Source: Octopus sinensis (Eukaryota). From it: a DNA stretch of 64,000 nt. The translations under genes and the position numbers were made by a program. Positions 1 to 62,049 of this stretch are shown here, piece after piece. The DNA lies in assembly GCF_006345805.1 (NCBI RefSeq), contig NW_021832221.1, positions 248,797 to 312,796 of the forward strand. Reading direction: 5' to 3'. The notes beneath the pieces were generated by a model. It worked only from the letters and a program-made list of their open reading frames with translations. It was not told the DNA's origin and did no database searches. Numbering within the stretch: position 1 is the first letter of the stretch; every line of letters starts with the position of its first letter.

Positions 1-2710
1 TTATATTGGGTAGTTTGGATTATTGTGCATATGTCGATTCGTGTTCTATTCTGCTGGATTTGTGTGTCGAGGGGTTGAGGACTGGCAATAGGGCGGTCGT
101 CCAGATCGTGGATTTAGCCATCAATGTTGTGATTTATGTTAATTTCAGGAGTTTCTGAATCGTGCGGGGGAGAATTTGAGTCACTCACAAAAATGGGATG
201 AGAAAATGCGGTCAGTTGTGGCAGATTTTGTGGGGGACCTGCAAGATTCGATTAATTTACAATCCAAAGACAACTTGGAATGCTTATTTAAAGTATTCGA
301 AAAAATCTATTCTGTATTTGTCATCCAATAAAATCTAGAAATTTGGATCTTCTTTTCCTCATGTTTTCACTTCGGTTGAAATTTTGCAATATTTTAGTCG
401 CTGTCGTGTCTGGCCAACCTTCGTTCCACGAATGGCTTCGAGTATTCCGAACAGCTCGACAGGACAATTGGAGCTGCGGTCAAATCAATGGGCCCTCAAT
501 TTGTGCTGTCTGTATTGGCAGTGGAATTCTTTCCCAATAATGACTTTGGGGACTTGACACATGGCTGGATCCTCCCATTATTGGCCAAAAATATTAAAAA
601 TGTGCCGCTGGAGTACTTTGTCTGCCGATTTCTCCCTCTGATTGACCAAATACAGGACAGGTGTAATCTGCTAGAACAAAATGGGAGATCAGTGTGTGCT
701 AAGAAATTGTCGACACTCCTGACTCAAATATGGGCACTTTTGCCATCGTTCTGCGACGGGGCGACGGATATATCAAATGTGTGTTTGTGTGTTATTCCAG
801 AGTGTTGATCCGATAATGCAGAGGTTGTATTCCCTGTGTGTGTCCGACTCCCCGCTTGTGGGGATGGCTCTCCGCGCATTGCGGAAGCTCATTGATACTG
901 CCCTGTCGTCCCCGAATTGTCAGTCACTGGGAATCCTCATTTTTAGTGGAGGATCGTCAAGTAGTGGGAAAATATACCAAAACATTCGTGTCTTTTTGCA
1001 TCAACAAAGTGATGGGATTGGAACATTCGAATGAAGGGAGAATATGGAAATGGAGTACATCACTACTATTAGGAGAGTAATCGGCTACTTGGTGAGCAGG
1101 TGAGACGGCAGTCTGTCATTTGTAGGACATTGGTCTGGTTTACTCGATGGTCTTGGGGAAAATGGGTGAACTAACAGTGGATAAATATAAGGAGAACATG
1201 CCATCGCTGTAGTGATTTGCTGACTATAGTAGACGAGCAATGTTGAGTGTGAGCAGAACAGGAGTTGTTTATTTGGGAAATGAACAGATTGGGGGTCTGC
1301 TTGGATATATTGTGAGAATATTGGAGGTGGGGCAGTGGGTGTATTGTAGAGTGGACATTCTATTGACCATTGTGTCCAGAAGAGAGGGTATGTGCTTTTG
1401 GGTGACATTCTTCATCATCCGAGGGGCTGATATATCTTCCCGATTGGGGGAACTCTCCCAATTGCTGTTTGGAGACACTGCAGATTCTTCGTTGAGTTCA
1501 TCAAAAGCAGTTTGCAGTGTATTTAAGTATTGAAGGCTCGATTTCGATGTCTTCTTCTCGTTTCTACGCGGCTTGCAGGTTACTCTGAACAAATTGTGGA
1601 CGGAATGGTCGCAGAAGGAATCATTGGGTTGGGGGAAATAGGAAGGAAGGCAAGAGATGGGGCGCACGTGCTTATTAATGGTGCCCGGCAATATATTCTG
1701 AGGACTGGCGTGGATATGGATTGTTGTGGGGCTACTACTAAAGTGGTCTCCAAATTGATGCTTGGACTGGTGGGAGATGGGTCACTTATATGTCGAGTAT
1801 TGGTAGCACTGAGAGGCCTCATTGGTCGGGAGTCGAGTATTGCTTTGTAAGAGTCCAATATAGTGACATTCACTGAGAAGATGGTGGAATTGTGCATAGA
1901 TAATGGGATCAGACTGTTGGGACATCCTCAGTCGGCTGTTGTACTTGAAAGTCTCGGATTGCTTCACTCCACGTTGATTTACTTCAACTGTGGAGTGGTA
2001 GTTTGTTCAATTCATAAAATGGTATTGTGTTGTCTGATTGAGTAGATTCCTGCTGTGATGAGGGTGGCTGGACTGGACTGTTCCAGTAAGATCAGAATCA
2101 AAAGAAGACGAATTTTGACCAAAGCGTGTAAAATGATTGGGTTGTCTCATGTTTGTTATGAGTAGTCTTGATTCACTGAAGGAACTAGTCCCAGTTGAGT
2201 TCCACAAGGTTTTGTCGAATATTGCCAAATCAATTCGTTCTAATAAAAAGACAAAGAATGATGATGAAGTGACACTCCATGGCCAAATGTTGTTTTCTTG
2301 TATTTATTTGCAGTGAGGGTGGATTGAGTGACTCGTGTGATGAGACTTGTGTGTCCTCCAGGAGTGTGAGGGGAGTGGTCAGACTAAGAAAGAATGATGG
2401 AGACATTGTAGATTTGGCAGATCCTTCTGCCATCGGGAAGACCATGGGTAATGTGTGAATATATATTTTGTTAGAATCTGTTGCTAGAGTGAGTACCCGG
2501 GAGAAATCGGCTGTTTCTGTCACGGAGGATGGGAAATTGGTGGTGATGGGGGAGTGTGGTGGAGATTTGGATGACGAGCCTCATTTGGATGTGAAACGTA
2601 AAAGGAGGAAGTTGGTTGACAAAAAGTCGCGTAAAAAGGCGTGGAAAAAGAATCGAACGACCATGCCTGCCAGTCAGAGGCGTGCCAGGAAAAGGCATGG
2701 ACATTACTGA
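1..2710 (+). CDS. RRP12: RRP12-like ribosome biogenesis protein (NUC173), 5' end outside window, many micro-introns
   Basis: Spliced translation gives EQLDRTIGAAVKSMGPQFVL...GWILPLL...QIWALLPSFC, matching the RRP12 signature GAAVxSMGPE...WLLP...W.LLPGFC. GT-AG introns of 22-28 nt restore frame (e.g. gtgtgtttgtgtgttattccag near 779-800). The basic C-terminus ends at TGA 2708-2710 (exact last exon less certain). Confidence 0.88.
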
Positions 2711-2972
2711 TATATTCTCTACAATTTAAACTTAGTTCTTTAATTTTTTAATGTTTAAAATGCATGTGTATAAAAATTGATATTAGCTATTCGACCCTCT
2801 TTTGGGCAATCGTGTTGATTTATTAAGGAGATTATTCTATCGACAACGCTATACCGTGTTTGATTGATCTTATAAATCATTTGCTGGATATATATTCGAA
2901 ACATATATCCCAGTTTATCAAAACAAACACTGACCATAATTTTACAGTTTTCAACTACCTATTTATGCGAAG

Positions 2973-3255
2973 CAGGTTTTTCCAACCTGCATAATATGAA
3001 ATATAACAAATGCGAAAGTTTGAGAAACATTGATGCTGAAATGTGGCTTTGTCAACCATTCGACCTGATTTGATAATATATGCAACCAACAAAATAATAA
3101 GATTTCATTTTCATTATTATAAAAATTTGGCATTAAATTATCAATTTTTGTACTTGGTTTTACACTCTTAAATTTATTTGTTTATATTTAAATGTGTGCC
3201 GTGGATTATTTTTTTAAGATTAGTGTGCCGCGAGAATATTTTTTGAAAAGCTCTG
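2973..3255. mobile_element. Possible hAT/Buster-like non-autonomous relic
   Basis: Left end caggtttttccaacc, right end gaaaagctctg followed by ctcTAgac (Buster-type nnnTAnnn site), internal gtgtgccg motifs. TIRs are imperfect and the left 8 bp do not match the putative TSD. Confidence 0.3.
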
Positions 3256-3596
3256 CTCTAGACAGCTCTCTCCATTTCGTTCTATTTTAAACAGCGACGG
3301 GCAATATTTTCAGCTTTAAACGCTAATTGAAGTAATCACACTAAACGAGAACTGGTTATTTGTAGATGTCAGGCATTGCTTTTGACTATAGGCAAAAAGA
3401 TTCGTTAGGCGAATTGACCCTCAGACTATACACTTTCTCCTTTAAAAAGAAAAATCGTCATCTCTTAAGTCTTCGGTGAATATTTGGCAAATTTCAGTAA
3501 TTTTGTATTTTTTTATTTTGAACAAAGTAAGTGTATAGTAAAATAATAACCTACAAAAAATATACGAATAAACTATAATTTCGTTTATTGTGGTGT

Positions 3597-4137
3597 ATGA
3601 ATTCAGACTCAGCGAAGAATACATTCCTCGATCAAATAAAAAAACGAAAAATATTAGAAGAAGAAGCCTTGATAGCCGTAATCGACCTACTAAACGTGAA
3701 TATAACCCCAGAGCAACTAAACACGAACGTACTGCCCTAAGAATACTCGTAGTTGGCACATTTGAACAAGCACTACTACAAGGACGTGGAAGAAGAGCGA
3801 TCAATTCAGCACATGTGTGGATACCCTCTCTGTGACAATCCTCTCACCAATGTCCCTATTCATCCTCATTCTCAGGTGCCTCAGAAAAAGTACAAAATAT
3901 GTTTATCGAGCAATACTGTCTACGATATTGCCAATCTTAAGGTTATTCTCTCACTAGGCCTTCTAGAAGTTCTGCAGTACGTCCTGCTACCACAATTCTC
4001 GCTCTGTTTTGAATGGACTGAGTGCTGAGCCTATTTGGGCCAGAACTTGCGAAGGAGTGTTCGTGGACAGGGAGGGTGATGTGTCTTCTTCCTCAAGTTT
4101 GGAGATTACTGCAGATTTTGATTCCATGTGTTTATAA
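3597..4137 (+). CDS. RPAP2: RPAP2/Rtr1 CTD phosphatase-like protein, copy 1 (155 aa, 3 introns of 24, 24, 25 nt)
   Basis: Spliced: ...YYKDVEEERSIQHMCGYPLCDNPLTNVPQKKYKICLSSNTVYDIANLKKFCSTSCY...EPIWAR, matching the Rtr1/RPAP2 zinc-binding domain (ERS..CGYPLC...KYKI...VYD...FCS.C). Confidence 0.9.
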
Positions 4138-4218
4138 AATAATATTTTATTATAAAAATAAATTATTAAATAATAATTAGATACTAAATTTAAATATTTC
4201 TAGTTGACGTGTCTGGTT

Positions 4219-4544
4219 ATGGTACTGTTTTTAATTCAGTAATCATAGGTGATAATTTCAGCAGCAATACTCAACAAAAAAGGAACAGGTGAATTAAAAA
4301 CAAATATTATAGAACTAATATCTCGACAGTTCGTGGATATCGACAGATCCACAATGGAAGGCCTACTGGCCGCCTTCCCACAACTCGTCAAAAACTCTAA
4401 AGACTACACATATGAAGAAATAGGCGAAATCCGCTACATCTATCAGCCAATCGAGGAACTCTACGTGCTTCTAATAACGAACAAGGCCAGCAATATAATG
4501 GAGGATATCGAATGTCTCCGTCTGTTCGCCCGAGTGGTATGCGA
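4219..4544 (+). pseudogene. ARCN1: Truncated delta-COP copy (N-terminal about 90 codons, broken in intron 3 by the duplication junction)
   Basis: Near-identical to 5864-6190 up to cgagtggtatgcga, then switches to the 2760-type spacer sequence. Confidence 0.85.
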
Positions 4545-4545
4545 A

Positions 4546-6190
4546 TGCATGTGTATAAAATTGATATTAGCTATTCGACCGTCTTTTGGGCAATCGTGTT
4601 GATTTAAGGAGATTATTCTGTCGACAACGCTATACCGTGTTTGATTGATCTTATAGATCATTTGATTATTTTTATTCACTGCAATAAAACGTCAAGTTGA
4701 ATACGTGGTTTACTGAGTGCATCGAATTTGGAGCACTGATAGTCAACATCGTGATTCAAGAACTGAATCCTGAATTTATTGTGTTTTTTATAAATTCTTT
4801 TTGTCCCAATATGAGCACTACACGATGTCATCGGCAATGACTAAGCTTTAGACAGCTCTCTCCATTTTGTTCTATTTTAAACAGCGACGCGCAACATTTT
4901 CAGCTTTAAACGCAAATTCGACAAATAGTTATCTATTAATAAAATCTGGACATTTTTAAATATAAAGTAATCTCACTAAACAAGAACTGGTTATTTGTAG
5001 ATGTCAGGCATTGCTTTTAACTATTGGCAAAAAGATTCGTTAGGCGAAATGGCCCTCAGACTATACCCTTTCTCCTTTAAAAAGAAAAATCGTCATCTCA
5101 TTAAGTCTTCGGTGAATATTTTGGCAAGTTTCAGTAATTTTGTATTTTTTTATTTTGAACAATTAAATGTATAGTAAAATAATAACCTACAAAAAATATA
5201 CGAATAAACTATATAAATAATTTCGTTTATTGTGGTGTATGAATTCCAACTCAGCGAAGAATACATTTCTCGATCAAATAAAAAAACGAAAAATATTAGA
5301 AGAAGAAGCCCTGATAGCCGTAATCGACCTATTAAACGTGAATATAACCCCAGAGCAACTAAACACGAACGTACTGCCCTAAGAATACTCGTAGCTGGCA
5401 CATCTAAACAAGCACTACTACAAGGACGTGGAAGAAGAGCGATCAATTCAGCACATGTGCGGATACCCTCTCTGTGACAATCCTCTCACCAATGTCCCTA
5501 TTCATCCTCATTCCCAGGTGCCTCACAAAAAGTACAAAATATGTTTATCGAGCAATACTGTCTACGATATTGCCAATCTTAAGGTTATTCTCTCACTAGG
5601 CCTTCTAGAAGTTTTGCAGTACGTCCTGCTACCACAATTCTCGCTCTGTTTTGAATGGACTGAGTGCTGAGCCTATTTGGGCCAGAACTTGTGAAGGAGT
5701 GTTCGTGGACAGGGAGGGTGATGTGTCTTCTTCCTCAAGTTTGGACATTACTGCAGATTTTGATTCCATGTGTTTATAAAATAATATTTTATTATAAAAA
5801 TAAATTATTAAATAATAATTAAATTGATACTAAATTTAAATATTTCTAGTGACGTGTCTGGTTATGGTACTGTTTTTAATTCAGTAATCATAGGTGATAA
5901 TTTCAGCAGCAATACTCAACAAAAAAGGAACAGGTGAATTAAAAACAAATATTATAGAACTAATATCTCGACAGTTCGTGGATATCGACAGATCCACAAT
6001 GGAAGGCCTACTGGCCGCCTTCCCACAACTCGTCAAAAACTCTAAAGACTACACATATGAAGAAATAGGCGAAATCCGCTACATCTATCAGCCAATCGAG
6101 GAACTCTACGTGCTTCTAATAACGAACAAGGCCAGCAATATAATGGAGGACATCGAATGTCTCCGTCTGTTCGCCCGAGTGGTATGCGAG
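4546..6190 (+). repeat. Tandem segmental duplication, unit 2
   Basis: Direct comparison with unit 1. Differences in RPAP2 are mostly synonymous. Confidence 0.9.
5239..5779 (+). CDS. RPAP2: RPAP2/Rtr1-like protein, copy 2 (intact)
   Basis: Same exon structure as copy 1. Amino-acid differences seen: D4N, Q to H in VPQKK, E to D near the C-terminus. Confidence 0.9.
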
Positions 6191-7581
6191 TGTGTTCTGA
6201 CAGTCCAGCTGTGTGAGTACTGTCCAGAAGTGACAGAGGAAACAGTCTACGACCAAACATTTGATTTAATATTCGCATTTGACGAGGTGGTCACTCAGGG
6301 CTACCGGGAAAACGTGACTCTCAGTCAAGTCCGGAAGTACATTGAAATGGACAGTCTGGACGAAAATCTCTACAATATTGAGAAACAGGCCAAGGAAAGG
6401 AAGGCTAAGCAAACCATCAGACAGGAGGCTCGGAGGATCACTCAAACTAAGATCCTGGAAGCCCGAATGGACCAACCTGAGGCCAATCCCCTCGCAGAAG
6501 CCATCAAACAGAAATTGTGGAAACATTTGACCAAGAATTCCAAACCGAGGGAGTATCCGACTGTAAATCACGTTATTCCTGAATTCCGCCAAAAGTCTAA
6601 TTTTGTATTTATTCGTAGACCTGTGAGGAGTGCCCCCAAACCGGTGCCCGACTCCCTCAAACTTGGGAATACGAGCAAGGAGGCCGAGTTTATGGCTCAA
6701 CTGCGAACAGAGGGGCACGTTTCGAGGACAGTCGACGTTGTTTCTACGGGAAATGTGCAGCGGAAATGGTGGTGATGTGTATGCATGTTTGAGTAGTGTT
6801 GTGGTGTTGGCGAAGGAGTCATTGGAGGTGGATGCAGATTGTGACATGGGATTGGTCAGTCTCAAAATATTCGGGTCACTTTCTGTGCGAATTGGGAATG
6901 GGGGGATGACTCGTTGTGCCGTGGTGGTGAAGGGGAGGGCAGAGGGGATTGTCTTCGAGGTGATTACTCTTCTAATTTGTAGACTCACCCCCGCATTAGT
7001 AAATCCGTGTTTGCCCAGAGTGGCAGATTGGAGTTGGCTGATACTAAATTTGAGTTCCCGTTGGACACGGACGCCTCACTCGTCAAGTGGCACCAGACTA
7101 CGAAAGATGACTCAAAATTGCCCCTCTCTGGTTGATTGTTGGACACATGTGTAGTACACTGCTGGCCAAACCCGAGTTCTGGTGGGATGTGTCTTGTGAG
7201 TGTGGAGTATGATTTGCAGTCCTCAATCGAGTTGTATGATGTGGTTATGACAATTCCCCTCAGGTTGTGTTATCCTTCCAATGTAGGAATCCGAGTTCGG
7301 TTAAAGTGACTCAGTGTGACTGTGGGGAGTTCTTTATTAACCGGTCTCGAGGGTGTGTTGAATGGCGGTTGAGTTCGCTTACGCCTTCTCAGCCTACGGG
7401 GATGCTGGAGTTTACAGGAGAAGGGTCCCCCAAACAGTTTTTCCCAGTGAATGTGTCGTTTGAGTCGTTTTCGTGTCTATCTGGTGTTGGTGTGGAATGT
7501 GTTGTCGTTGGGGAGACGCAGGCTGACTTTGATTTTGAGGAGTCGCTGAATGTCAAGTCATATACTATTAGGTCTACCTAA
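5864..7581 (+). CDS. ARCN1: Coatomer subunit delta (delta-COP/archain)
   Basis: ATG, then a 27-nt intron (5867-5893), then VIISAAILNKKGT, a 24-nt intron (5934-5957), then ELISRQFVDIDRSTMEGLLAAFPQL...IRYIYQPIEELYVLLITNKASNIMEDIECLRLF...FDLIFAFDEVVTQGYRENVTLSQV. The C-terminal mu-homology domain ends GSPKQFFPVNVSF. Confidence 0.95.
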
Positions 7582-9180
7582 TTTTTATTATTACTATTAA
7601 TAATAGTACGTTTAATTTCACTCTTTCTGTGCGCATATGAAAGTGGTGTTCTGTCGTTGACTAAGTGGATAGAATTCCTTTATCCCTTATTTAAGTAAAA
7701 TTTATAAATAGCATTTTTACTATTCCAATTGTACTAGTCAACTTTATTCTACCTATTAAAGTAATCCAATTTTTGTGACTTTTTTTTGTGTTGTGTGATT
7801 TTGGTAATTTTTGAGTAATTTTTTTGAATAATCTAAAATTTAATATTGCTGAATAAACATTGGTTCTGTGATTTTAGAACAAATTTCATTATTTCAAGTC
7901 AATTTTTGAATTGTTCCCAGGTTTTCTTTTGATTATATTTTGTTAAATTTAAAAATTTTATTGGCTTGGCCCGTATTTCAAAATGTTTTATTTTCATTAA
8001 GATCAGCCATAATCATTTCCTGTTTTATAAAAATATTCTTAAACGGTTTTTGAAAAATCGTATTTTACGCATGAAGAAAAAAGTTTGTGAGGTAAGTGAA
8101 TACTATGGAGGATTTCATTCTGTAATTTTTATTCATGTTTCATGTTTATTTATATCATGTTTATTTGTATCAAGATCAATTGACAGTCCATTCCTTTACA
8201 TTTGATTATTTTGTTTTTCAATTCCTGACAGTCTCAATTATACTTTTCCGAGCATGCTCTTTGAAGCAACTCCTTTGTCAAAGCGTATTTGTTGAAAAAA
8301 TTATCTGCTCTGTATAATGAAAAAAACTTGAAGTTTATTATTAGTTTAGAGAAGGGGACCTGACAAGCAGAAGGAGAAATGACCATCGGGAACGGACATG
8401 GCTTTTCCAACGCACATCAATAGCCATCTTGCGTGAGAATTGCCATTCCATCTTATCCTCTGCTGCTAATTAAATACTAAATAATTATGTCATTGACACA
8501 ATAATTATAAATTAAAAAAAGTTTAGAGAAGAAAGGGAGGTGGTGCTTGAAGTTTCATCCTTTATTCACTTCGAAGGCTTTGGGCTTAGGAAATTAATTA
8601 GTTGCTCATTAACTGTTAATGAGTTTCTATTGATTAATGATAGTTCATATTATTAGTTTATGCGTGTAATCAGATATTTCTTTAGAAGAGAATCCATTAT
8701 AGCACTTAAGTTGAGACGGTTAAAAAAAATGTTTCTTATGATTTGATGGCAAATCAGGACAGTTGAGAGCCGCTGCTCTAACATATACACTCTGTCACTC
8801 ATAAAATTTTAGACAGAAAATAATAAACGACACCAAAATTAACAAAAAGACCTCAAAAACAGAAAAATTGACCAAGTTGACTTAAACTTTTATTCTAAAA
8901 GTTTTTCTGAAATAAAAATGTATTTCTCGTATTTTTATAATGAAATAATAACTTTCGAGTAGATTTAATTGACTTCTGGCTGCCCTATTGTTTACTAATA
9001 AATCATTATTCTAGTATTGTTGATGAACATTGATAAAAATAAAGTAAGTCAAGTTAATAAGCGTCGCCATAAGCATGGGACATAATTTTCAGTTGATTTT
9101 TATTATAGTTAAATTCATATTTGATTATAATAAAATTTATAATTTAGTAAAAAATAAATCTAGATTAAGTATTAAGAAAA

Positions 9181-10331
9181 ATGCTCTGCGGTTCTAAACC
9201 TTATAATTAACTACCTAAAATATATTTAGAAGACTCTTGGCTCGACAAATCGTCGACTCCACCAACAGGCTACCTCCAATTGATGTGCGTCCTCCTGCAG
9301 TCATTTCAGGATCTTAAACACATTCGAAACGCCACCACAACCGAACTAATTTTCCCATCACTAGAATCCCTCATGTCTGACATACAGTCCTACGGATATT
9401 TCCAAAAGTGTGATCTGATTGTGATTTTTCTTCCCCTCATGTGGGCATTCGTCCGGACAAGACTAATAAAGGACGTCCAAGTTGGAGGACACGTTCACTC
9501 CTAGTCATTCGTCTCCCGAAGGTGGACACGCATCCCCCAGTCCGTCTCCCGGAGGGTGGCACAGAACTCAGTGCAGACGTGCATTCACTTGCTGTTCACT
9601 GTGTGCTCGTGCTATAGCGTGCTGCACCTCCGAAGGCACTACTTTCACGACCCTCTCTCATTTCTGGGGGGTTAGTTGTGTGTAGTATCCCAGATTGGAC
9701 TGCCATTGAGGCTATCCCCCGAGATATCTACGTCAATTACGTCCTGCAGATGACCAGTTATGTCTCGGGGGTGTACTCCACTCTCTATGTCGATGTTTGG
9801 AGAGCAGACTCCCCCCTTCTCCTGTTCCACCACTTCCTCACCATTAGTCTGATTGGCCTCTCCTACATCCTCAGGTGGACTCTCCAGTGAGTGTAGGTTC
9901 TTTCATACAGGAGTCTTTGTCATGTTTCTTCATGACTTTCTCGACGTGTTTTTGGGAATCGCCAAACTATTTCAATATTTTGGGAAATACTACACTCCTC
10001 TCTGCTTCATAGCCATTTCTAACATTTCTTTATTCCTCTTTTCTGCACTCTGGTTTCCATTTTGGATCATTTTAGGTTCGTCTCGAGGCTTAATTGGTAC
10101 CCAATGAAGGTCTTGTTTGCCTGCTCTGTCGGCTTCGTCGTCTACCCCGAGATTCCCCAGTCCTTCTATTCTGTTTTTAACAGTTTGCTTTGGTTTCTTC
10201 AACTGGCGCACGTTATTTGGTCGTTTGTATGCCATTTTTGGTATTTCTAGTTTATCTTGAAAGCCGTGTATCGCATTCTTCACGGATTCATGCCCGAGTT
10301 CAGAGAAGAGGAGTCAGATGGGGACAAATAA
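9181..10331 (+). CDS. CERS1: Ceramide synthase (TLC/Lag1 domain), CerS1-like
   Basis: VDVWRADSPLLLFHHFLTISLIGLSYILR...GVFVMFLHDFLDVFLGIAKLF...SRLNWYPMKVL, containing the Lag1 HH and HD motifs. The start exon is inferred. Confidence 0.88.
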
Positions 10332-11135
10332 TTACTTTTGTTTGTATATTTAATGCATTTAATGGATTCATTTTATTATCGTTTTTAATGAAAAGCAACG
10401 GCAAACATGTCGTGACTCGTCTAAATTAGTTCTTTGAAATCTCTTAGTAATTTATTGATATTTAAATACTCTTGTGCATAATGGTTGCATGAGATTTAAT
10501 CAATTATCAAAATACACTTTACAGTCACATCTAATAGTTTGGAGTGCACATTTCTGAGGAGGTGAGGTTTATTTTTAATGGCAGACTTGATATTTCCAGT
10601 TGGGGGACTTTTATCATTTGCTTTTGTATTTTATTCGACATTAAATAAATTAAATTCTTACGCGTCTGTAAATTATTTCTTCTCAGTGGACAATAAATCA
10701 ATCACGCAATAAAAGATAAAATTGTTAAAGATTTTCTTCAAAAAATTTCTATAAAGTACAAAAAGAGGAAGAGTAAGGCACTGTATCACGAATAAAAAAC
10801 AGTCTTTATTTTTTGATTCCTCATCCCGAGAATGAACTTGTTGAAAAACAGGTTGAACCCCGAAAAGACGGAAAATACTTTTTTAGGCACAAGACTTTTT
10901 ACACCGATTATGATTAGTTTCATTAAATATTGAATAAAACAGAAATTAAAAAAATAAAAGAAGTTTTGTTTACTTTCATTTTTGAGGCACACCTCTGCAT
11001 CCCCTGACCATTACAACTGCCAATAAAGTACTTTTGGTTCGCCAAACCGGACTGTAATAATTTATATTTTATTTTAATGTGATTAAAAATAAAAAAATAA
11101 TAGACATATTCATATAAAATATTTTTGGTGTCCGT

Positions 11136-12480
11136 ATGATTATCCCACGTTTCTGGCTTAAACAAGACGACAAATTTATTTATATAAATGTAAAAATAAT
11201 GCGCTGTTACATAAAAAATACGGAAATCGTTATCCCCGATGAGAACACATTCATATTCAGTTCCGACCCATACTTTCTCAGACTTAATTTCCGCAACCAA
11301 ATAAAAAGAAAAGACGAGGACGAATGTGATTGCTCTTATGATGCCGACCAAGGTCACTTGCTTAAGTTTATAAAACAGGAGTATTGACCTTCTCAGTATT
11401 AAAGAAACAAAAATCTGAATTTTTTGACGACTTGGAAATGCTGACATTCCTCATGACCCCGCCGGATATCCCCCTACCCAAAAGACCGGGGATCGAAGAA
11501 ATCGACGGCCAGGAATCCGACCACGAGGAAATATGTGTAGGAATCCGCCACCCAAATTCCTACGGATTCGCATTTCGGCGAAACGTTCAGAGTGATGGAG
11601 ACTTTTTCCTAAAAGTACAAAGTTTGGAGTATTTAGGACGACTTTGGTGACATTTTTGACAAATCTTGTATTTTTATCAGCCAGGAGGAGCGGGAGAGAA
11701 TAGAAAATTCACATTTCAACGATTCGCATTATTTGTATGTTGAATAACTGGTTATCCCTCAGGGCAGATCTGCTGGACCAGGATAACGAAATTGCCGACC
11801 TTCTAAAATATGCCCAGCCCGAATGTGACGAGGACAGCCTGTTAGAATTGAAGGATCTGCCGAAAAGAAGCTGTAATTGTTATCCCCATAACAGACCTCC
11901 TGGACGGCGAGGAGGAGAACTGGGCGTGTTGTGGATTAGTGGATGTACTTCTCGCCTATTGCTACGAGGATGTGGTGACTGGGGGCCATTTTAGTGTTGA
12001 GGTTGTCCTTTTATTCTCAGGTGGAGTCTCCGTGGACTATTGTCAGACTGGCAGCCACATTGGGGTGTCTGGTGAGACATGAGACAGTGGGGGACGTCCT
12101 TCGGTCATTCACTCGCCGTTGTTTGTGTTATCCGCTTTATCGAAGTCTCAAGTTGATATCATTTGTACGGACTCGTGTGGCCGAGTTGCTCAAATGTATG
12201 TTTGGGGATTTATTTTAGGCAAGAAGAGTCTGGTTAGTAGTCTTATCCGACTGCGGTCTATTCTGAGGAGTGATAATTACAACGTGCTGAATGATTTGTA
12301 TGTGGATGATTACTGTGTGTGGACTCAGTCCTTGAAGAGTGGGCGACTGGCTGATTTGGCGAAGGAGTTGTCGGAGGTTTATTATGGGGATGGACTGGGT
12401 AGGTTGTGTTGGAGACGGAGGATATTGGCCTCCACATTCCAGAATTACAAATCGCCGCATCTCTCATTCTCCAAGAGTAG
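11136..12480 (+). CDS. SHQ1: SHQ1 H/ACA snoRNP assembly factor
   Basis: MIIPRFWLKQDDKFIYI...FSSDPYFLRLNF...SYDADQG (CS domain); VESPWTIVRLAATLGCL...RSFTRRCLCYPLYRS; ends DIGLHIPELQIAASLILQE*. Confidence 0.92.
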
Positions 12481-12609
12481 ACTGCCTTGTTATTGCTTGT
12501 TTATAAATTGTTTTATTGTTTATGCTACATTGAAAGAATAAATAAAATTACGATTAAGTTATTTAAAATATTCAGATAATAAATTCTTGGTGTTCCAATT
12601 CTTGTTTGT

Positions 12610-14424
12610 ATGCCACATCAATCTAAAAACCGAAAAGTGGCCTTCTCGAAAGAAATCATGTTCTACTCAGCCTGCCAATCCAAGGATTTCGAAGACATTG
12701 AGAACTACCTGAATGCAGGGGCTGACATAAACTATCGCAGTACTTCATCCCTCACTGCTCTCCATCAGGTGCCCTCCCCCACTCCACTCCAGGCCTGTAT
12801 TGATGAGAATTTGAGTCTCGTCCGCCTGTTGATCCACAGAGGAGCCGATCCTTCCGTGAAGGACGAGGAAGGGTGGACTCCCCTCCATGTGGCTGCCTCC
12901 ATCAACAATTTCGAGATAATTCAGTTACTCCTTCACTTAGTCGGAGATTTAGGCTTACTTAAGATTCCTCGTCGAGCACGGGGGGTCTTGTGTCTCTGAT
13001 ATCAACTACGATGGGGAATTCCCTCTCGACATGACCACTGATTCCCAAATCGAGGACTTTCTCAGGGCTAAAATGACCTCCCAAGGTATCCCTCTCAGTC
13101 CCATCTGTTCAGGTGTGGATAGAGAACAGATTCTGGCCAAAGAGCACTCTCAAATGCTGAGGGACGCCCACAAATTGGGTGAATTGGGGGGGAATATGCC
13201 GTGTGACCCCCAGACGGGTGCCACTGCTTTGCACGTGGCCTGTGCGAAGGGATACATCGACGTGATCGAGTTGTGGGTGGGGGTGATTGTAGGGCGTTGT
13301 TGAGTGGGGGGGCGGACTTGGACGTGGAGGACAACGACGGGTGGACTCCCCTCCATGCGGCAGTCCACAATAACCGTGTGGCCGCGGTCACTTTGCTTAT
13401 AAATGCGGGAGCCGACACTACGATTCGATCGAAAATGGTATTTGGGTGTGAATATTGAAGGGGGAGAGCCAGAGGGATTTGGGGGAGGGCGATTTGGTCA
13501 AAATAATCGACGATCTGATAGTGAAAAACGTATTTAAGTTGTTATGACGAGTAGTACCAACTGCGGAAGGACAGAGAATTGCAGAAAAAGCAGTACAATA
13601 CGAAAAGAGAGTTTTAGACATTTTTTGTCGCGATATTCAGAAAAGCAGAAGACGGAGATAAAGGCAATGGACAACACGAACGAATTGAATCACATCCAGT
13701 CGTGCATTGCCGAGTTCGACCCCTCCTCGGACAAGTCTTACTTTTCCCTGGCTTCAGTCGAGCCAATAAGTTCCATCAGGGTGGACTCGTTGTGTCATTT
13801 CAGTCAAAGGGACTTCGCCATCGACTCAGAATGCTCGACCAATTCCACCGAATTGTAGAGACGGACGATTCCCTCTTCTCCCCTCGACTCAAGTCCCCCG
13901 AGTCCCCTAAGAAAGAGTCAGTCGACGTGGAGACTAAAACGTGGTGACATGTTGTATATTTCTAGGTCGAAGGGGAAGAGAATGACTGTGCAGGTTCAGT
14001 CGAGTCGGCCATTTCTAGGAAGTGTTGGACAAGTGCATGGACTTGCCTCCCACCGACAAAATACAGGACGAGGATGCCTGTTTTCAGCGTAGTGTCTCGA
14101 CTAATGTTAAGTCACGAATTCCGTTCCCTACAGAATGCGGTTTTTGGTGAAGGATGCGGAGAAGGAGACCGATTGTGGGAGATGCAGTCGACTGAGGATG
14201 GAGTTGGATCAACTACGGGCGGACAATGACTTGATCAAGACACAACTCAAGTCACGCACGTCGGAGGGGAGTAGAAAGGCTGATGTGAGGATTGGTTTGT
14301 GTGGACTGAGTAGGAACAATTGACTGAAATGGTCGATTATTTGGACAGAATTTGTCGTTTGGAGGACGAGAATCAACGATTGACAGCAGAGAATGACAGA
14401 TTGCGTTCAATGCTTTTTCAGTAG
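12610..14424 (+). CDS. PPP1R12: PP1 regulatory subunit 12/MYPT-like ankyrin protein with C-terminal coiled coil
   Basis: RVxF-type KVAF; ankyrin repeats LTALHQACIDEN, GWTPLHVAAS, TGATALHVACAKGY, DNDGWTPLHAAVH; leucine-zipper-like end LEDENQRLTAENDRLRSMLFQ*. Confidence 0.85.
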
Positions 14425-14879
14425 TTTATTTAATTAGCCCTTTTGAATAGTGGATGCTTTATTTTTATGCTGTTTCTGGTTATTTTCACATTTCTAATTC
14501 ATGCTGAGTTAAATAGACAAAATGTAATGATTTAATGGAATCCATAAATTATCACTTCTTATTGTTCTTCTGTTTGATCTTAAAGTGGTTAGCTGCTTCA
14601 TGAATAGACCATATTGTTTACAAAATCGATTAGAATCGAATAAAGGTTAAGTATTAACCATTTTCACTTTAATCTACAATCGGAATCTTGCATTAATTCG
14701 ACAACACGCAGTTCACAATTGTTTTTCCACTAAATATTTATACCAGGCATCCACAAATTAGACTGGTTCTTGGAGGGACAAAATAATAATTTAACTTTTC
14801 GCAGTACACTAAGATTGGTCAGACTCTCAAACAACGTTTCACTAAACAACGTTTCCGAGAACCTTTTCTTCTTAACTCT

Positions 14880-16800
14880 TAGTTTCGATTAAGATTAAGT
14901 AAATCATGGTTCATAAATCGAACTTACCTTTCAAAATTAGCTATCAACAAAAACAGTCAATGACGAGTTTTTTTGAGTTGGACCGGAGCGTTTGTTATCG
15001 TGCGACCAACGTTTGGTTAATCTGTGGACACTTTGTTGGACCTTTTCGATTCACCTCCTGTCGGACCACGATAACCGCAGGCGTAGGAAATGAACGGTTC
15101 AAAGTATTGACGGTAAATATTCGTCAGTACCGGGTGGGAACCGTTTTTCCATAAACAGGATAGACTTTTGAGTACGTTCATTTTTTTTCACATTTACGAA
15201 GAAGGTTGTCTACGTGCGGGGAGAAGGAGAGGAGCATGTCGAAGGTTACCTCTAAAACCGTCTGACTTCTGTAGAAGGGTACGGACACATTGTTCAACTT
15301 CAAGTTGACCGAAGCCCTTCCCAATCTTTTATCAGATGTGAAAAGGAACGTGGCGGACGCGTTTACCACGAATCGGTTGTCAGTTAGTCATAGGTTGAGC
15401 CAATCCAAGTTACCTTGGAGCCTTTCAGAGGCCTTCTGGGTATCCCGGTCCCTCGAGGCTAATACAATGTTGTCCGCATATGAAAGGACAATATCATTAT
15501 TGAGGTCTTCCAGGAAAAGGTTGAAAAGGGCCGGGGATAAGAGGGATCCCTAGGGTACTCCGTTGGGCAGGAGACAAGACGTGGACTTCAGGCCTCCGAG
15601 GCAAACCCTTCCCCTTCGTCCACTTAGGAAACTGGTGATTCATAGTTTGAGTTTTGGCGGAAATTTAGTTTGAAATATCTTCCTTGATAGGAGCTTCCTC
15701 AAGACAGAGTCGAAGGCTTTGTGGATGTCTAAGAAGCAAAGCACGGCTTTTGGTGCCTCGGTTTGCTTGAAAAGTCGGTACAATTGAATTCCGTCAATGA
15801 CTGTAAGTATGAAGACGTGGACTTTGCCTTTTTGAACCCAGGTTGGAAAGGCCTTTCTGGTAAGAATTCTTGTATTCTTCAAAGAACCATCCTTTCTAGA
15901 ATTTTTGACATGGAGCATAACAGGGAAACCGGCCTGAAAGATGCCGGGTCGTCTCTTGGTCTTTCAGGTTTCAGTATCGGCCTTATTAGAGCCTGTTTCC
16001 ATCAGACGGAATCACATTATGGTTGACCCAGTAGTTGAAGATATCCGTTTGAAACGTGACTCCTTCCACACCAAGATTTTTTAATAGAATGACCTGATTT
16101 TGTTTGGGCCGTAAAAATATAACGTTTTTGTGGAGTGCAAAGTATCCACAACCTCTTTTACTGAGTGGTGGAAAGATTCCGCTTGTTTCTTTAGGCTTCT
16201 GATTGAGAGAGGCGAATCTGATTTCCTGTTCTCCTTGTGTGCTGTTTTCGCGGAGAATTTGATGAGGATGTTCACGTCTTTTTGATCATATTCTTTAACA
16301 ATTTCGGTAGCGTCTCCCTTGGCCACGTCCACAATTCTCCCGTTGAACGATTACGGTTTACGGCTGTAAGAATGCAATTCCATTTCAAACAAGTGTTTCT
16401 GTGTTCACTAGTCTTCAATTTCTTGTTCAATGATCTGATAAAGATCATTATATCAGAAGACATTTGGTTTGATTTCTTGAGGCAATTTCTTTCCTTGGTC
16501 AGGCCGGATCTTCTTCGGCTACAAGCAGCGTGAGGTTGACATTTCGGTATAACCATTGCTCTTGCTTCCAGAATAATTTTCGAGAAAAGCCAATGGCCTT
16601 ATCAAGAGAGCTGAAGTTGTGTAGATTGCAATTCTTTAGTTTCGAGTTCAAAATCTCCTAGGACCGTGGCCAATTCGCCGAATTGTAATTGTATGAAACA
16701 GGAACTTTCGTGTTGACAACTTCCCGTTTGATCTCTACCGCGATCGGATTGTGGTCGCTTCTCGTCTCATAGAGGACTGACCACTCCGTTGTCGATAGGT
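14880..16800 (-). mobile_element. Decayed APE-type non-LTR retrotransposon (LINE), 5'-truncated
   Basis: APE C-terminal motif SDHNPI (about 16742-16759); RT motifs FLDIHKAFDSV, GVP*GSLLSPALFNLF (stop at 15550-15552) and SYADNIVL; several stops and frameshifts. Confidence 0.85.
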
Positions 16801-17595
16801 TAAAATTCATAAACGGTAAAAAAATATGAACGATGATTCACTCAAAAAGAAAAGATTAACTAAACTATACTTTTTTACGATAGAGTTGTCGGTTCCGTGA
16901 AATCAAAACGAAAGTTTTACATTTGGCGTTCATGAAGTGAATCACGGAAGAACCGTATGAGCCAAATTCAATATGCAGTTTTCTCAAAAATCTGAAATTA
17001 AACCAAATTCCTCCTAAAAGTAATCAGCCTCCTAATGTACAGATGTTATTGAAAGATTGAGAAAATCCTCTGCTTCATGTATATTTTCCTGAAACGCATG
17101 AAAGAAAATTTTAATTTCAGGCATTCGTTAATAAGAAATCTTCAAAAAACTGAAAATTGACAGATTTGTGTAAAACTTGTATGCATTTTGCCTACTCAAA
17201 TCCAATTCGAGAGATTAATCCTCATTTTAGGATTCTTCAAAGTGCGTCTACTAATATCTCTACACCACTTTCTCAAACCCATCAATTTAGTTAAGGTTGA
17301 AGAATCTGGAAAGATATCCTAAAAAGTCATTGTTGTGATTTTAGGACAAAAATCACAGCCCCTGTTTACAGCCCAAATTATTTGATTCAGTTTCTTAAAT
17401 TTATTTCTTTAACGAGTCTCTAATAGTTGTACAGACAAAAAGGTCTGTTGCTGCTAGTTTTTAGGTTGCCCTACCCTGGTAGTGTTTATTACACCATCCT
17501 TTAATGCACACAGCATAATTTCCCTCACTTACATCATAAAACAAGTTTGAGTAAATGCACAATCAAAAACCAATTAGTGAGTGTTAGTGGATTAA

Positions 17596-18126
17596 TCAAG
17601 CCAACGCTTTATTGAGCTCATCATAGCACATTTGAGATATTGTGGCTTCGGCCCGTTCAACGTCGTCTTTGGCATTGTTCAGATCAGTGAGGGATTGTGC
17701 CAGCCCATCCCTCACAGCCTGACAATAAACATTCACTATCAATACTTGTTTGTCAATTCTTTCGAGAGGACACAACTCCTCGGCCAAAATGCGCACAGCT
17801 CCCGTTCCTGTCACTGTCAAGGTCCCACTGCTCACTAGCAAAGTCAGGAGGCTCATTGGGGTACCAAAATATTTGACCGTCTCCCCGTTATCCTTGTGCA
17901 CTGAGAGGACACCCGGGCGAAGAACACCTAAAATTGGCACGTGTTCTGCCAGGATTCCCAGATCTCCGTCTACAGTAGAGACGTCTACTTGTTTGATGGA
18001 TTCTGATTTGAAATAAATCTTAATTATAGATTAAATTGAAACTTCATTCGGGGAACTAAGAGTGAAGGCCATTTGTGAGGCTCTCCGAACAGACCGAAGG
18101 AAAATACCAATTGCGGGCGCAAACAT
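17596..18126 (-). CDS. ATP5F1D: Mitochondrial ATP synthase F1 subunit delta
   Basis: MAFTLSSPNE-IYFKSESIKQVDVSTVDGDLGILAEHVPILGVLRPG...KYF-VSSG...ILAEE; three micro-introns; short N-terminal presequence. Confidence 0.95.
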
Positions 18127-38950: not shown

Positions 38951-39549
38951 TAATTCTAAATATAAAAAAACTTCCTCCTTCTATACGACAAAAGTAAAGT
39001 TTGTAATTTTGTCCAAATAAAATGATTTTAAAACAAAACGGAAATAAGTTATGAGAGAAATATAACTTACTATTATTACCAAAAATTACTCTTTTCAATC
39101 TGGGGTGGTTACAAAATCAACACAATGAGCGTAAAATGCCCAATAAGGAATCTTATTATTATAGAACATTTCGTAGAACCACGAACAGAGTCATAGTCCC
39201 ACACATGCCACACACGATACGACTTTCTTAACCATAGTTATTTAACTTCCGCGGTTTTGAGCTTACCTGTAGAGTTTATCCAGTCAATACAGTTATTTTA
39301 GGTTTTTTCCGCGCGTATCTCATAGGGAAATTTTTCATGAAGAATCTTGAATCATATAAAACAGTTAAAACAATCTTGTTATCAAAATAAGTGAGGTCAG
39401 AAAAATAAAAACTGCATTAATAAAAAATCGGGATTATTGCGCAACTTAGTTGCACAATAGAATTGCGAAATAAAAATAATTATTGAGATTTATTGAAATG
39501 AAAAAACACACCATTGAAAATAAGAAATGAATAAACAAGTAAATTGAAT

Positions 39550-52995: not shown

Positions 52996-53697
52996 TATTC
53001 TAAATTTATCTAATAAAATTAAAAAGCTTTAACCTATTTAAATTTGAGAAATATACGGTAGTCGCAGATAATCAGGAAAATGACCAATTACCCAACAACA
53101 TCGCTTCAGAAGTGATTCTTCTGAAGATTCACCTAAAGAAATCTTGTTACGACTGCTACTTCATTTAAATGAGTAGGGTCGGGTGCCAACTCGAATTCTA
53201 TACGATTCAACAATTTCATCAAATCATCCATCGGTAGTAGTGTCTACATCTAGCAAGGACGTAGTCACTGCAGGTTTTAGACCTGCGATTACTCGTGAAC
53301 ACATAATAATTTTAAACCTCGATTAAGACTTAGATCAGATAAAACTCAATATTTCATCGCTGAATAATTGAATGATAAATATGGGTTTATTAGATCAATT
53401 TAGTCATCAAAAAAAAAGAACAGTCCAAGGAATTTGCGTGTAGGGCGCATTGAATTGAAAACCACGAATGTATCAACCTCGGTTTAGCCCCAGAAGATTT
53501 TTCGGATATTTTTTCAACTAAAAGCTCATTTCGAAGGTGGCGTATTTAATCTCCCACTTTCGCCAGTTTAGGGCAATCCTACGAAGTAATATCAACTTCG
53601 AAAAGAAATGAAAGAGAGAAATTGTCAATAAAACGGAATGAAATATCCGAAAAATAAAATGTTCGGAGACCTTCGAGCTCATTAATCAAAAAATAAA

Positions 53698-54258
53698 TTA
53701 TATAACTCGATCATAAACAGTGCCATTCATAGCATTGCCTTGCATCGTCCACCGAACATTTCTCTCTAAAAGCCCCAAATCAAGATCATTCGCTGCATCT
53801 TTATTAAGAGCATCCTTGGAGGACATTTCATCAAACAACAAACAAAGAGAATAAACCACCGATCCTAAATCAATGGTCGGAATCCAATTGTCCCTAAAAA
53901 TATTCCAATATTTACCCACCGCAGAAAACTGAGGCAAACAGCCCCAGAAGGGTCGATGTTTGGATGATAAATCACATTGCAGCAAACTATCGAAGGAGCA
54001 CGAAAGGGGTATTCATCGGGGAACGTGAATTTAAAATTAAATTGCCCTCCTTTGTAGAACCCCTAAAGTAACTACCAATAATTATACGGATTGAGGAGAT
54101 ATTTTAATATAGAAATATTCATTTTTTGATGGATGGGGGAAAGTGAGAGAGCAGTGAGAAGGGATTTTAAGATTTTCGATATCATAATTTATTCGATTTA
54201 AGCATCTGAGATTTGGTTTTATAGATTCATTTTCGAATTCGGTATAAAGACGAAACAT
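53698..54258 (-). CDS. UBE2M: NEDD8-conjugating E2 Ubc12-like (2 introns)
   Basis: MFRLY...ISPQSGFYKGGQFNFKF...YHPNIDPSGAVCLSFLRDNWIPTIDL...DALNKDAA...ERNVRWTMQG...VYDRVI*; catalytic Cys retained. Confidence 0.88.
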
Positions 54259-60492: not shown

Positions 60493-61947
60493 ATGGAGAC
60501 AAAAATAACATATTCTAGCGAAAAGGAGAATCATCTAGAAAACGGTTCAGTAAATTATAAAATTTGATGCCATAATAATCAAACTAATTCAGATTTAATA
60601 GATATCGGCAAGAACACGTATGAGCCCCTCCTAAACTGTCAGTAGTAATTCGACGAGTGATCCTGTAACAGCATACCAACTCATCGAGAATGCTCCAATC
60701 GACTACGAGGAACGGGAGGACGTGATAGAGGACAATCCCACTAATGACATCCAAGTATGAATAATGACACATTGTAGGCGGACCCCTCACTCGACGACAC
60801 TGCCTTCAATTCGGTAAATGTTTATATTACTTATACTTATAGAAGACTGAGGAGGATCAAGTTGGTGTACTGTTTAATGACTTGCAGGAGGGACGTGGTG
60901 ATACGCGAGTCATCAGAGTATTTGTCACTTTAATATACTAGTATAAGAAGGATGGGAGAGGACAGAAGGATGGTTATTTCTTATTCTCATGTCAAGACTC
61001 GAGACATCATCGGTCGAGAAGGAACCAGGATTCCACTCACAACGAAGAAAGTGTATCCTGTCTTCTCCATATCCGCAATTTGACTCGCCCATACTTACTG
61101 GACGACCTACTCGACCTCCTCTCTTCTTCTGGAGAGTTTCTAAGAGAGAGCATTTGGCAGGACAAGATCAAGTTCAGATGTTTTGTGCAGGTTTGTTGAT
61201 GGGGGTATTGTTAAGTACGTGAATGAAGAGGTGGCCCGCTCGGCGAGGAATGCACTGAATGGAATGCGGTGGCCTCCTTCCAATCCACGACAACTCCGCG
61301 TGGAATATTCCGATGAGAACGAATTGGCGGCGATGAAGGCCCGAGATGTGCGGATATCTGAGCAATCGGCTGGAATGCCCAGCAGTGCGGATGTCACATT
61401 CAGCAGGAGGCCGAATGAACGGTTCAAAGTGACACGGAAATACAATGTCCGCGAGTGGGATGCTCAGAAAACAGATTATTCCGGTCCTCAGCCCAAACTG
61501 AGGAAGGAGGATGAGAATGGGAATATTCCACCCCCGTCAGACCGACCGCATAGATATGGCAATACTGTGTTGTGCTATTTGTAGAGGGTGCTGAGAGTGA
61601 GAAAAAGGACGAGAAGGAGGCCGAGAAGTTGTTGGAGACGTTGTTCAGGAAGACGACATCGAAGCCCTCGATATATTGGTGTCCGGTTAATTAGGATGAT
61701 TAATTGGGTAGGCACAAGTAGACGAGTCGAAATGTGATGATATAAATGAAGTATATTTCTTTACTAATGTGTAGGACAAGCCTGCTGAAGTGGTGAAGGT
61801 CCACTGTTATGTTAATTAAGTAGGATTCTCGTCCGAAAGGGAATTCCCCCCGCAAATATTACTCGGTTGACAATGTGGAGTGATTTGTAGAGAAGTAGTC
61901 CTGAGAGGACACGAAGAAGTAGGAGTCCTCGAAGACACAGGAATTGA
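60493..61947 (+). CDS. ACIN1: Acinus (RRM + RSB motif + RS tail), short form
   Basis: LLHIRNLTRPY...WQDKIKFRCFVQYVNEEVARSARNALNGMRWPPSNPRQLRVEY...VREWD...KLLETLFRKTTSKPSIYWCP...RSRSPRRHRN*. Confidence 0.92.
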
Positions 61948-62049
61948 TTGTGTTCTTTTCCTCTTTTTTGGCTAATATTTTTTCGATTCAATTGTTTCTG
62001 TATTAGTTTATTAATCTATTCAACAACACAAGAAACGCGTGTGAGGTTA

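Follow-up and report, generated by a model that had tools for sequence, protein, structure and literature searches.

Strand composition that changes sign within genes has been described in fungi. In most unicellular fungi, four-fold sites carry a C-bias towards the 5' end of genes and a G-bias towards the 3' end, which reaches into the untranslated regions (UTRs) and biases amino acids (McLean & Tirosh 2011, PMC3315797). These opposite skews were found in 33% of C. albicans genes and correlate weakly with expression; both mutational (polymerase-phase-specific) and adaptive (C-avoidance) explanations were offered, and the authors argued against a transition-type strand bias (PMC3315797). The classical transcription-associated signature, as summarized in PMC10030826, is an excess of G+T on the non-template strand (Green et al. 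2003; Touchon et al. 2003; Polak & Arndt 2008) and is linked to germline expression. A C-bias at transcription start sites (TSSs) of invertebrates, plants and fungi has also been reported (Aerts et al. 2004; Fujimori et al. 2005, as cited in PMC3315797). Here we analyse a strand skew in 64,000 nucleotides of DNA (the window) deposited under the name of Octopus sinensis (contig NW_021832221.1, positions 248,797 to 312,796), in which a sequence-only reading had noticed that head-to-tail housekeeping genes, among them RPAP2, delta-COP and SHQ1, are A/C-rich in their 5' parts and G/T-rich in their 3' parts, with a reset at each tiny spacer. That reading took a constant sign along each gene to be an established property of transcription-linked asymmetry, a premise contradicted by the fungal work (PMC3315797). 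Sign-changing intragenic skew is already known from fungi; what is new here is its occurrence in an animal, the coupled A-T flip and the unusual amplitude.

Several short housekeeping genes of the window run from an A/C-rich start to a G/T-rich end, and the change includes silent codon sites and introns. We expressed the bias as keto skew (G+T-A-C) of the sense strand, at third codon positions unless stated otherwise. Gene models came from a home-made dynamic-programming finder that combined codon log-odds with short GT-AG introns, and which misses in-frame introns; identities were taken from Pfam. Third-position keto skew rises near-linearly from 5' to 3', from -0.52 to +0.64 in delta-COP (5864..7581, + strand), from -0.40 to +0.72 in SHQ1 (11136..12480, +; Pfam SHQ1-like CS and SHQ1 domains) and from -0.40 to +0.12 in RPAP2, which is present as copies a (3597..4137, +; Pfam RPAP2_Rtr1 4e-14) and b (5239..5779, +). 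The flip from A/C to G/T falls at 3897-3995 in RPAP2a and near 5540 in RPAP2b; delta-COP has an A/C zone at 5903-6670 and a G/T zone at 6671-7581, and in SHQ1 the A/C zone extends to 11563. We then permuted same-amino-acid codons within each gene and used the permuted sets as the reference for the slope of third-position keto state along it (synonymous shuffle). The observed slopes stood at z +6.6 for delta-COP, +5.4 to +5.6 for SHQ1 and +2.9 to +3.4 for RPAP2 (+3.4 for copy a, +2.9 to +3.1 for copy b). The trend follows the sense strand on the - strand too: the ubiquitin-conjugating (E2) gene UBC (53579..54258, -; Pfam UQ_con 3e-28), whose 3' end faces a convergent neighbour, rises from -0.16 to +0.5 with a change-point at codon 76 of 200 (z +2.0 to +2.2), and a second - strand gene (g57) gave z +2.9.

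Pooled over delta-COP, SHQ1 and RPAP2, four-fold sites pass from A.35, C.31, G.20, T.14 to A.18, C.21, G.34, T.27, while at two-fold sites T/(C+T) climbs from 0.41 to 0.68 and G/(A+G) from 0.35 to 0.68. Four-fold GC skew goes from -0.20 to +0.39 in delta-COP, from -0.19 to +0.25 in SHQ1 and from -0.33 to 0.00 in RPAP2, and the intron cores of SHQ1 show keto values of -2, +4, +2, +9, +13 and +12 in order. The hand counts of the sequence-only reading proved exact (5941-6120, A66 C45 G29 T40; 6781-6960, A35 C20 G73 T52; 11221-11280, C18 G8; 12301-12360, C9 G22), and the introns that it quoted lie where it placed them. Its extension of the same flip to further genes fared unevenly. RPAP2 bears it out, whereas in the ceramide-synthase-like gene (CerS; 9181..10331, +; Pfam TLC domain 2e-25) only T-A rises (T-vs-A z +2.4; G-vs-C z -0.1, with C>G throughout) and the synonymous shuffle was not significant (z +1.3). 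The ACIN1-like gene (60493..61975, +; Pfam RSB motif and RRM) shows a clear all-base trend (standardized slope 3.0) with a weak synonymous one (z +0.7). In the MYPT-like ankyrin and coiled-coil gene (12610..14424, +; Pfam ankyrin repeats), the two suspected cycles are both visible, from -0.24 to +0.36 and then from -0.32 to +0.40 (flip 13174, reset 13555, flip 13940, next reset 14619), but their prominences of 45-46 amount to only about 2 sigma each and the shuffle gave z +1.5, not significant. The synonymous slope is flat or negative in the visible part of RRP12, in the AT-rich genes (the 4051-aa gene, tektin, TRPA and the 1981-aa coiled-coil gene, none with a gradient) and in the reverse transcriptase (RT).

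The polarity resets abruptly between neighbouring tandem genes. Across the 84-bp spacer between RPAP2 and delta-COP (5780..5863) + strand keto skew falls from +0.20 to -0.18, and across the 129-bp spacer between SHQ1 and MYPT (12481..12609) from +0.23 to -0.19, so that both the spacer lengths and the resets claimed for them stand. The jump ranges from -0.33 to -0.42 at five tandem junctions but is inconsistent where genes converge or diverge. One reset, a maximum of cumulative keto skew at 3520 (prominence 186), lies just upstream of the RPAP2a ATG (3520..3597), and others fall at 5903 and 12612. The G/T bias of delta-COP carries on past the gene to about 8749, where the reset lies 432 bp upstream of the CerS ATG, and the reset at 10689 lies 447 bp upstream of the SHQ1 ATG. 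When the gene map was shifted along the skew profile (five genes), none of 2000 shifts matched the observed fit of 10.0 (null s.d. 1.4; p<=0.0005). Gene-anchored excursions of cumulative skew have prominences of 76-186; excursions of 30-50 also occur inside the flat 4051-aa gene and do not exceed random-walk noise. A fixed periodicity of about 1 kb, one of two behaviours that the sequence-only reading had proposed for the switch point, was rejected, as the excursions of prominence 30-50 are within that noise and the wiggles in TRPA are weak.

The two RPAP2 copies belong to a tandem duplication of approximately 1.6-1.8 kb within 2759-6190, which also produced a truncated copy of the delta-COP 5' end (4219..4549, +), A/C-rich like its parent and with a skew maximum at 4258 and a minimum at 4498. 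The copies share 96.8% identity over 1227 bp (blastn), and the segment 4541-5020 contains pieces of 2759-2883 and 3255-3383. The roughly 25 differences between the copies are unpolarized (10 C/T, 6 A/G) and gave no informative substitution spectrum.

Could the gradient simply reflect chance or the domain composition of the proteins? First and second codon positions trend as well, and in CerS and TRPA the T-rich 3' half codes for membrane segments, as such an explanation would have it. Against this stand the synonymous shuffles, the introns, the gene-map shift test and the behaviour of orthologues. We aligned delta-COP (over its full length) and SHQ1 with 14 animal orthologues each and scored residues by the keto content of codon positions 1-2. 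The amino-acid-encoded skew of the orthologues is flat (slopes +0.04 and +0.03, not significant), while the window proteins depart from them by -0.05 in the first 40% and by +0.09 in the last 60% (p=0.004 pooled). Since the skew is present at silent sites and in introns while orthologues are flat, protein composition is not its cause; it is the skew that drags protein composition, in agreement with the Val/Gly-rich C-terminal parts noted earlier. For delta-COP, SHQ1 and RPAP2 the chance or composition explanation is refuted, and overall we give it next to no credence.

The window is most likely DNA of a dicyemid, a kidney parasite, within the host assembly (GCA_006345805.1). Its GC content is 35.8% and its genes are eukaryotic, with GT-AG introns of 20-30 bp; dicyemids have a median intron of 27 bp and a genome GC content of 36.7% (PMC6543705, PMC6736024). 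The database entry for its delta-COP, from the 312,796-bp contig, is named 'coatomer subunit delta-like [Octopus sinensis]', yet the protein is only 35-37% identical to true cephalopod and other animal orthologues. It is this match in GC content and intron size, together with the distance of delta-COP from animal orthologues, that points to a parasite. The protein database contained no dicyemid orthologues for comparison, the next best matches being animals at 30-49% identity. RefSeq proteins under the Octopus sinensis name on these contigs thus resemble parasite proteins. Skew receives no mention in the two dicyemid genome papers or in a 2026 paper on ultra-short introns.

We next asked how general the gradient is, using ten further loci of about 22 kb each from the same assembly, reached via paralogues of the window's LINE RT. 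All fetched loci (L001-L011) are likewise dicyemid-like, with 20-30 bp introns, 36% GC and approximately 36% protein identity to molluscan orthologues. We treated open reading frames (ORFs) that had paralogues at other loci as transposon-derived (TE ORFs) and kept them apart, although several 'single-copy' ORFs in the RT-flank loci also look transposon-derived by eye. Among 35 single-copy genes at these loci the mean keto z was +0.71 (p=0.007), with six genes above +2 and one below -2, whereas the 42 repeated ORFs had no trend (mean z -0.01). For all 51 host genes, including those of the window, the mean z was +0.98 for keto (p=2e-4), +0.77 for G-vs-C (p=2e-4) and +0.82 for T-vs-A (p=1.5e-3); purine skew and GC content had no positional trend in this set, and the 43 TE ORFs pooled had no keto trend (mean z -0.04). 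Significant upward change-points occurred in 10 of 51 host genes versus 1 of 43 TE ORFs (Fisher p=0.010). Intron cores agree: over 345 introns, keto skew rises with relative position from +0.02 to +0.15 (rho 0.15, p=0.0045). In weaker form the positional trend therefore extends beyond the window. Its average amplitude is modest, third-position keto averaging about -0.05 over the opening 450 nt and between +0.08 and +0.11 over the final 450 nt, and the window genes are the extreme of a general tendency. Third positions of TE ORFs have C>G and T>A over their whole length, unlike host genes.

The genes with strong gradients are housekeeping genes: delta-COP, SHQ1, RPAP2, RRP12 and UBC in the window, and RPL10A, PNO1, RNase P p30 and enoyl-CoA hydratase elsewhere. 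Flat genes include tektin, TRPA, innexin and the giant 4051-aa gene. A housekeeping-versus-specialized sorting of all 51 genes was dropped as too subjective. Gene GC3 is raised where the skew is present (rho 0.28, p=0.05).

The resemblance to the fungal opposite skews is close. Both have a C-bias on the sense strand at the 5' end, a G-bias at the 3' end and intermediate values between, at four-fold sites and with an effect on amino acids; both affect many but not all genes (10 of 51 here, against a third of those in C. albicans) and both correlate weakly with simple covariates. A reach into flanking untranslated DNA may be a further point in common: here the first 100 nt after the stop codon are biased, and upstream DNA is neutral on average. 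The differences are equally clear. A-T skew is flat in fungi, with A>T everywhere, but in the dicyemid flips together with G-C, such that the 3' zone is the complement of the 5' zone; the best dicyemid genes reach a very large amplitude (third-position keto -0.5 to +0.7); the organism is an animal with 25-bp introns, which are skewed too; and the negative skew of fungi peaks in the promoter and 5' UTR, where dicyemid upstream flanks are neutral on average. With classical transcription-associated asymmetry the dicyemid shares a G/T bias along the bodies of RRP12 and PI4KA, in the 3' parts of short genes and in introns, and housekeeping genes are the strongest cases. The classical asymmetry has one sign and, in mammals, tends if anything to peak near the 5' end; in the dicyemid the first 0.3-0.9 kb have the opposite sign. 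The C-bias at TSSs likewise shares a negative sense GC skew near the gene start, but the reports describe a narrow TSS peak, unlike the gene-long ramp with coupled A-T seen here.

Long genes reveal that the pattern is oriented with transcription. Only the 3' 786 codons of RRP12 lie in the window (3..2729, +; Pfam RRP12_HEAT 2e-44), with the ATG 1384 bp upstream of it. The sequence-only reading had called the 3' part G/T-rich, and the whole visible part is so, with third-position keto of +0.14 to +0.26 in every 100-codon bin. A transcription-oriented model predicted a short A/C zone at the missing 5' end, and when this DNA was fetched (the gene model there came out too short) the zone was found: the first 50 codons have a third-position keto of -0.36 and + strand keto is about -0.2 over some 300 bp, followed by approximately 3.8 kb of G/T-rich sequence, so that the flip falls at about 7% of the 4.1-kb gene. 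In PI4KA, at fetched locus L003, the A/C zone is limited to the first 100 visible codons and gives way to a G/T-rich stretch of 1750 codons (>5 kb), the flip being within the first fifth. This lopsidedness, a short A/C zone before a long G/T zone, gives the pattern its orientation. The flanks point the same way. On average, upstream DNA is neutral and G/T bias after the stop codon is confined to the first 100 nt (+0.07, p=0.001), while single genes may carry it 0.2-1.2 kb beyond the stop; and 3' G/T zones are also found where the neighbour is convergent or a transposable element (UBC, RNase P p30 and the fetched gene L010_14191). Neutral upstream flanks, bias after the stop and 3' zones at convergent neighbours are more readily accounted for by a transcription unit than by symmetric action from the spacers. 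The gene that precedes RRP12 (positions 1-1824 of fetched locus L011, or -4000 to -2178 relative to the window; 493 visible codons in 14 exons) also ends G/T-rich (+0.13 to +0.33 in its last ~300 bp), and a reset precedes the RRP12 start.

The skew reflects a gene-oriented asymmetry at the level of DNA or pre-mRNA, and we consider it probable, with some reserve, that this stems from a transcription-linked mutation pressure on broadly expressed genes active in the germline, whose promoter-proximal zone is reversed. The sense (non-template) strand of the gene body and of the first ~100 nt past the stop is enriched in G and T, the classical transcription-associated sign, whereas the promoter-proximal 0.3-0.9 kb or so, from the ATG or somewhat upstream, has the asymmetry in reversed polarity and an A/C-rich sense strand. 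The G/T bias grows towards the 3' end. In genes of 0.5-1.7 kb arranged head-to-tail with spacers of 84-129 bp the two zones abut, which would give the sawtooth, a near-linear ramp with a reset at each spacer. We infer that the asymmetry is mutational and due to transitions, with C>T, A>G or both occurring on whichever strand is more exposed; a bias of this type predicts that A-T flips with G-C. A dependence on germline expression is plausible. The reversal at the 5' end might arise if RNA polymerase II states or repair differ between initiation and the later phases of elongation and termination, as has been suggested in fungi; promoter-proximal antisense transcription could be an alternative source.

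Several observations weigh against this reading. The canonical mechanism does not account for the A/C-rich 5' sense strand. Across the ten strongest genes, four-fold sites in the first 40% (A.35, C.28, G.18, T.19) match the complement of the last 60% in composition (A.34, C.26, G.20, T.20; p=0.58); the two zones themselves differ sharply (chi-square p=8e-13; A from.35 to.20, T from.19 to.34). With the near-linear ramp, this looks more like one process gradually changing direction than like separate initiation and termination regimes. Short genes flip at about 40% of the coding sequence, scaling with length (rho 0.77-0.84), a correlation to be read with the caveat that the choice of genes favours central flips. 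At CerS and SHQ1 the A/C zone begins some 440 bp before the ATG, MYPT has two cycles in one apparent gene, the housekeeping genes ATP5D and CTP synthase have no gradient, and the total sample is some 0.3 Mb rather than a whole genome. The reverse-complement symmetry asserted by the sequence-only reading thus holds in short genes but fails in RRP12 and PI4KA, and the same two genes break the scaling of flip position with gene length as a general rule, which leaves it to the short, strongly graded genes.

Much of this would follow from recurrent double-strand breaks, or another end-directed process, at promoter spacers. With 5'-3' resection the bottom strand would be bare to the right of each spacer and the top strand to the left, and deamination of exposed DNA (C>T, A>G) would yield the observed sign with no special assumptions, as well as the antisymmetric composition, the near-linear ramp with its flip at ~40% of short genes, the abrupt resets and the extension of zones into the non-coding flanks of CerS and SHQ1; the raised GC3 of affected genes is what biased gene conversion near hotspots would give. 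Yet G/T zones of 3.8 kb in RRP12 and >5 kb in PI4KA, opposed to A/C zones of about 0.3 kb, are asymmetric and run far past usual resection lengths. Upstream flanks are neutral on average, 3' G/T zones lie beside convergent spacers that lack promoters (UBC, RNase P p30), convergent and divergent junctions have no consistent jump, and the fungal pattern is pronounced in Candida albicans, which seldom undergoes meiosis (PMC3315797). We therefore judge this explanation improbable as it stands. A broader version, unlikely as well in our view, invokes a single bidirectional process at promoter-bearing spacers that exposes opposite strands on the two sides, whether by break and resection or by very dense initiation of DNA synthesis; it would impose an antisymmetric, deamination-type signature on each short gene, over an ordinary transcription-coupled G/T bias in long genes. 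If it were true, the sawtooth would be a sequence-level map of the sites concerned.

The sawtooth also invites comparison with replication skew domains (human N-domains; jumps at yeast origins and termini, PMC3459929; bidirectional asymmetry at CpG islands, PMC2817419), which have abrupt jumps, linear stretches and the same keto axis. Their scale is 10 kb to Mb, their amplitude is small and they are independent of gene orientation, unlike the dicyemid cycles of about 1 kb that are oriented in long genes. Origins at spacers with an A+C-rich leading strand, as in S. cerevisiae, K. lactis and C. albicans (PMC3459929), and random termination within genes could in principle generate miniature N-domains. 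Because the sign of replication skew differs between lineages (PMC3459929), sign alone does not decide against them, and the shape, an abrupt jump at the spacer with a linear return, fits. The long genes are nonetheless asymmetric between their two spacers, a third-position amplitude of +/-0.5 dwarfs known eukaryotic replication skews, many weak origins should give small additive steps in place of full sign reversals, and transposon ORFs and AT-rich genes of the same regions are unaffected. No replicon spacing near the 0.5-2 kb required here is known, the known ones being one to two orders of magnitude larger. A replicative origin is accordingly very improbable. Gene-sized excision or amplification, in which each gene would be a separate molecule with end effects, takes its appeal from the circular DNAs and chromatin diminution reported in dicyemids (PMC6543705). 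Here, though, the genes are contiguous on one 312,796-bp contig, somatic molecules leave no heritable composition, the asymmetry of long genes argues against a symmetric end effect, and circular contigs of Dicyema yielded only mitochondrial domains in conserved-domain searches (PMC6543705); we find the idea scarcely credible. The suggestion that each gene is its own mutational unit is thus upheld in that the unit is the gene or transcription unit, while the gene-scale replicons, convergent antisense transcription and gene-sized excision put forward to account for it find no support.

Selection on the nascent transcript or on DNA offers a different account from the mutation pressure that we favour. 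An A/C-rich 5' part might keep the RNA start unstructured or free of R-loops, and a G/U-rich, C-poor 3' part might slow or terminate RNA polymerase II before a neighbour only 84-129 bp away. The strongest resets do lie at tightly packed tandem pairs, with the large jumps at the five tandem junctions, and the presence of the skew in introns fits an effect on pre-mRNA or DNA. The first 200 nt of delta-COP and SHQ1 fold far less stably (-34.6 and -21.7 kcal/mol) than composition-averaged pieces (-52.8 and -48.2 kcal/mol), but no differently from shuffles of each zone's own sequence, and the weakness is purely compositional. Ginno et al. (2013) reportedly found terminal GC skew with R-loops at the 3' ends of closely spaced human genes. 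The dicyemid pattern resembles this terminal skew of gene-dense human regions in its G-rich 3' sense strand, but it is gene-wide, T rises with G, and G-runs, the usual promoters of R-loops and pausing, are not enriched in the G/T zones beyond composition and are often depleted (z -1.4 to -2.3 in most zones). The absence of G-run enrichment and the diffuse nature of the bias fit mutation pressure better than selected G-tract signals, and G-quadruplex or G-cluster terminator elements were rejected. Pairing between the 5' and 3' parts of the RNA (mRNA circularization) was likewise discarded, with duplex energies not beyond composition (z -1.4, -0.7 and -2.4). Selection must also contend with a ramp that covers whole genes and not just their ends, a G/T bias in RRP12 and PI4KA that persists over kilobases with no terminator nearby, and a shift of amino-acid usage against the orthologue consensus, a cost not obviously repaid. 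The adaptive C-avoidance hypothesis discussed for fungi (PMC3315797) is a precedent for it, and we regard selection as unlikely.

Third-position G+T passes from about 25% to about 80% within one gene and measurably shifts the encoded amino acids, so stationarity along genes should not be assumed in models of codon usage, gene prediction or phylogeny for this fast-evolving lineage. The dicyemid genome offers a stronger signal than fungi, tiny introns within the ramp that serve as near-neutral reporters, very short spacers and an A-T component that narrows the types of mutation. For D. japonicum a published genome, stranded RNA-seq and a heterozygosity of 1.24% are available (PMC6736024), which makes the choice between mutation and selection, and the role of expression, directly testable.

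The MYPT-like gene model is uncertain between approximately 13560 and 13930. Its middle (13380-13950) has two long open frames in the A/C-rich part and an internal ATG near 13680, and the skew resets here; the locus may comprise a single gene, with or without an internal start, or two. A further A/C-to-G/T cycle follows at 14619-16801 (reset 14619, flip 14960, reset 16801) with no confident gene, the region holding only a 233-aa, seven-exon + strand model that lacks a Pfam match and a decayed RT-like fragment (15640-16556, -). Two 24-nt introns, at 3852-3875 and 12769-12792, are in frame and free of stop codons, so that ORF-based models read through them; gene prediction in this genome may systematically overlook or miscall introns of this kind. 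ATP5D (17596-18126, -) and tektin (18878-20364, -) lie beyond, and the window further holds a TRPA channel, the 4051-aa gene, a LINE reverse transcriptase and the 1981-aa coiled-coil gene. The gene of ~4051 aa (21740-34070, +) contains a single unbroken exon of 3426 codons (23311-33588), whereas introns elsewhere come about every 200 bp. This AT-rich gene (GC3 0.28) lacks a skew gradient, and its sole domain match is a weak one to DnaJ close to the C-terminus. A second contig carries a copy 77% identical to the LINE-like RT ORF (36983-39169, -), which also has many relatives of 45-60% identity in the assembly.

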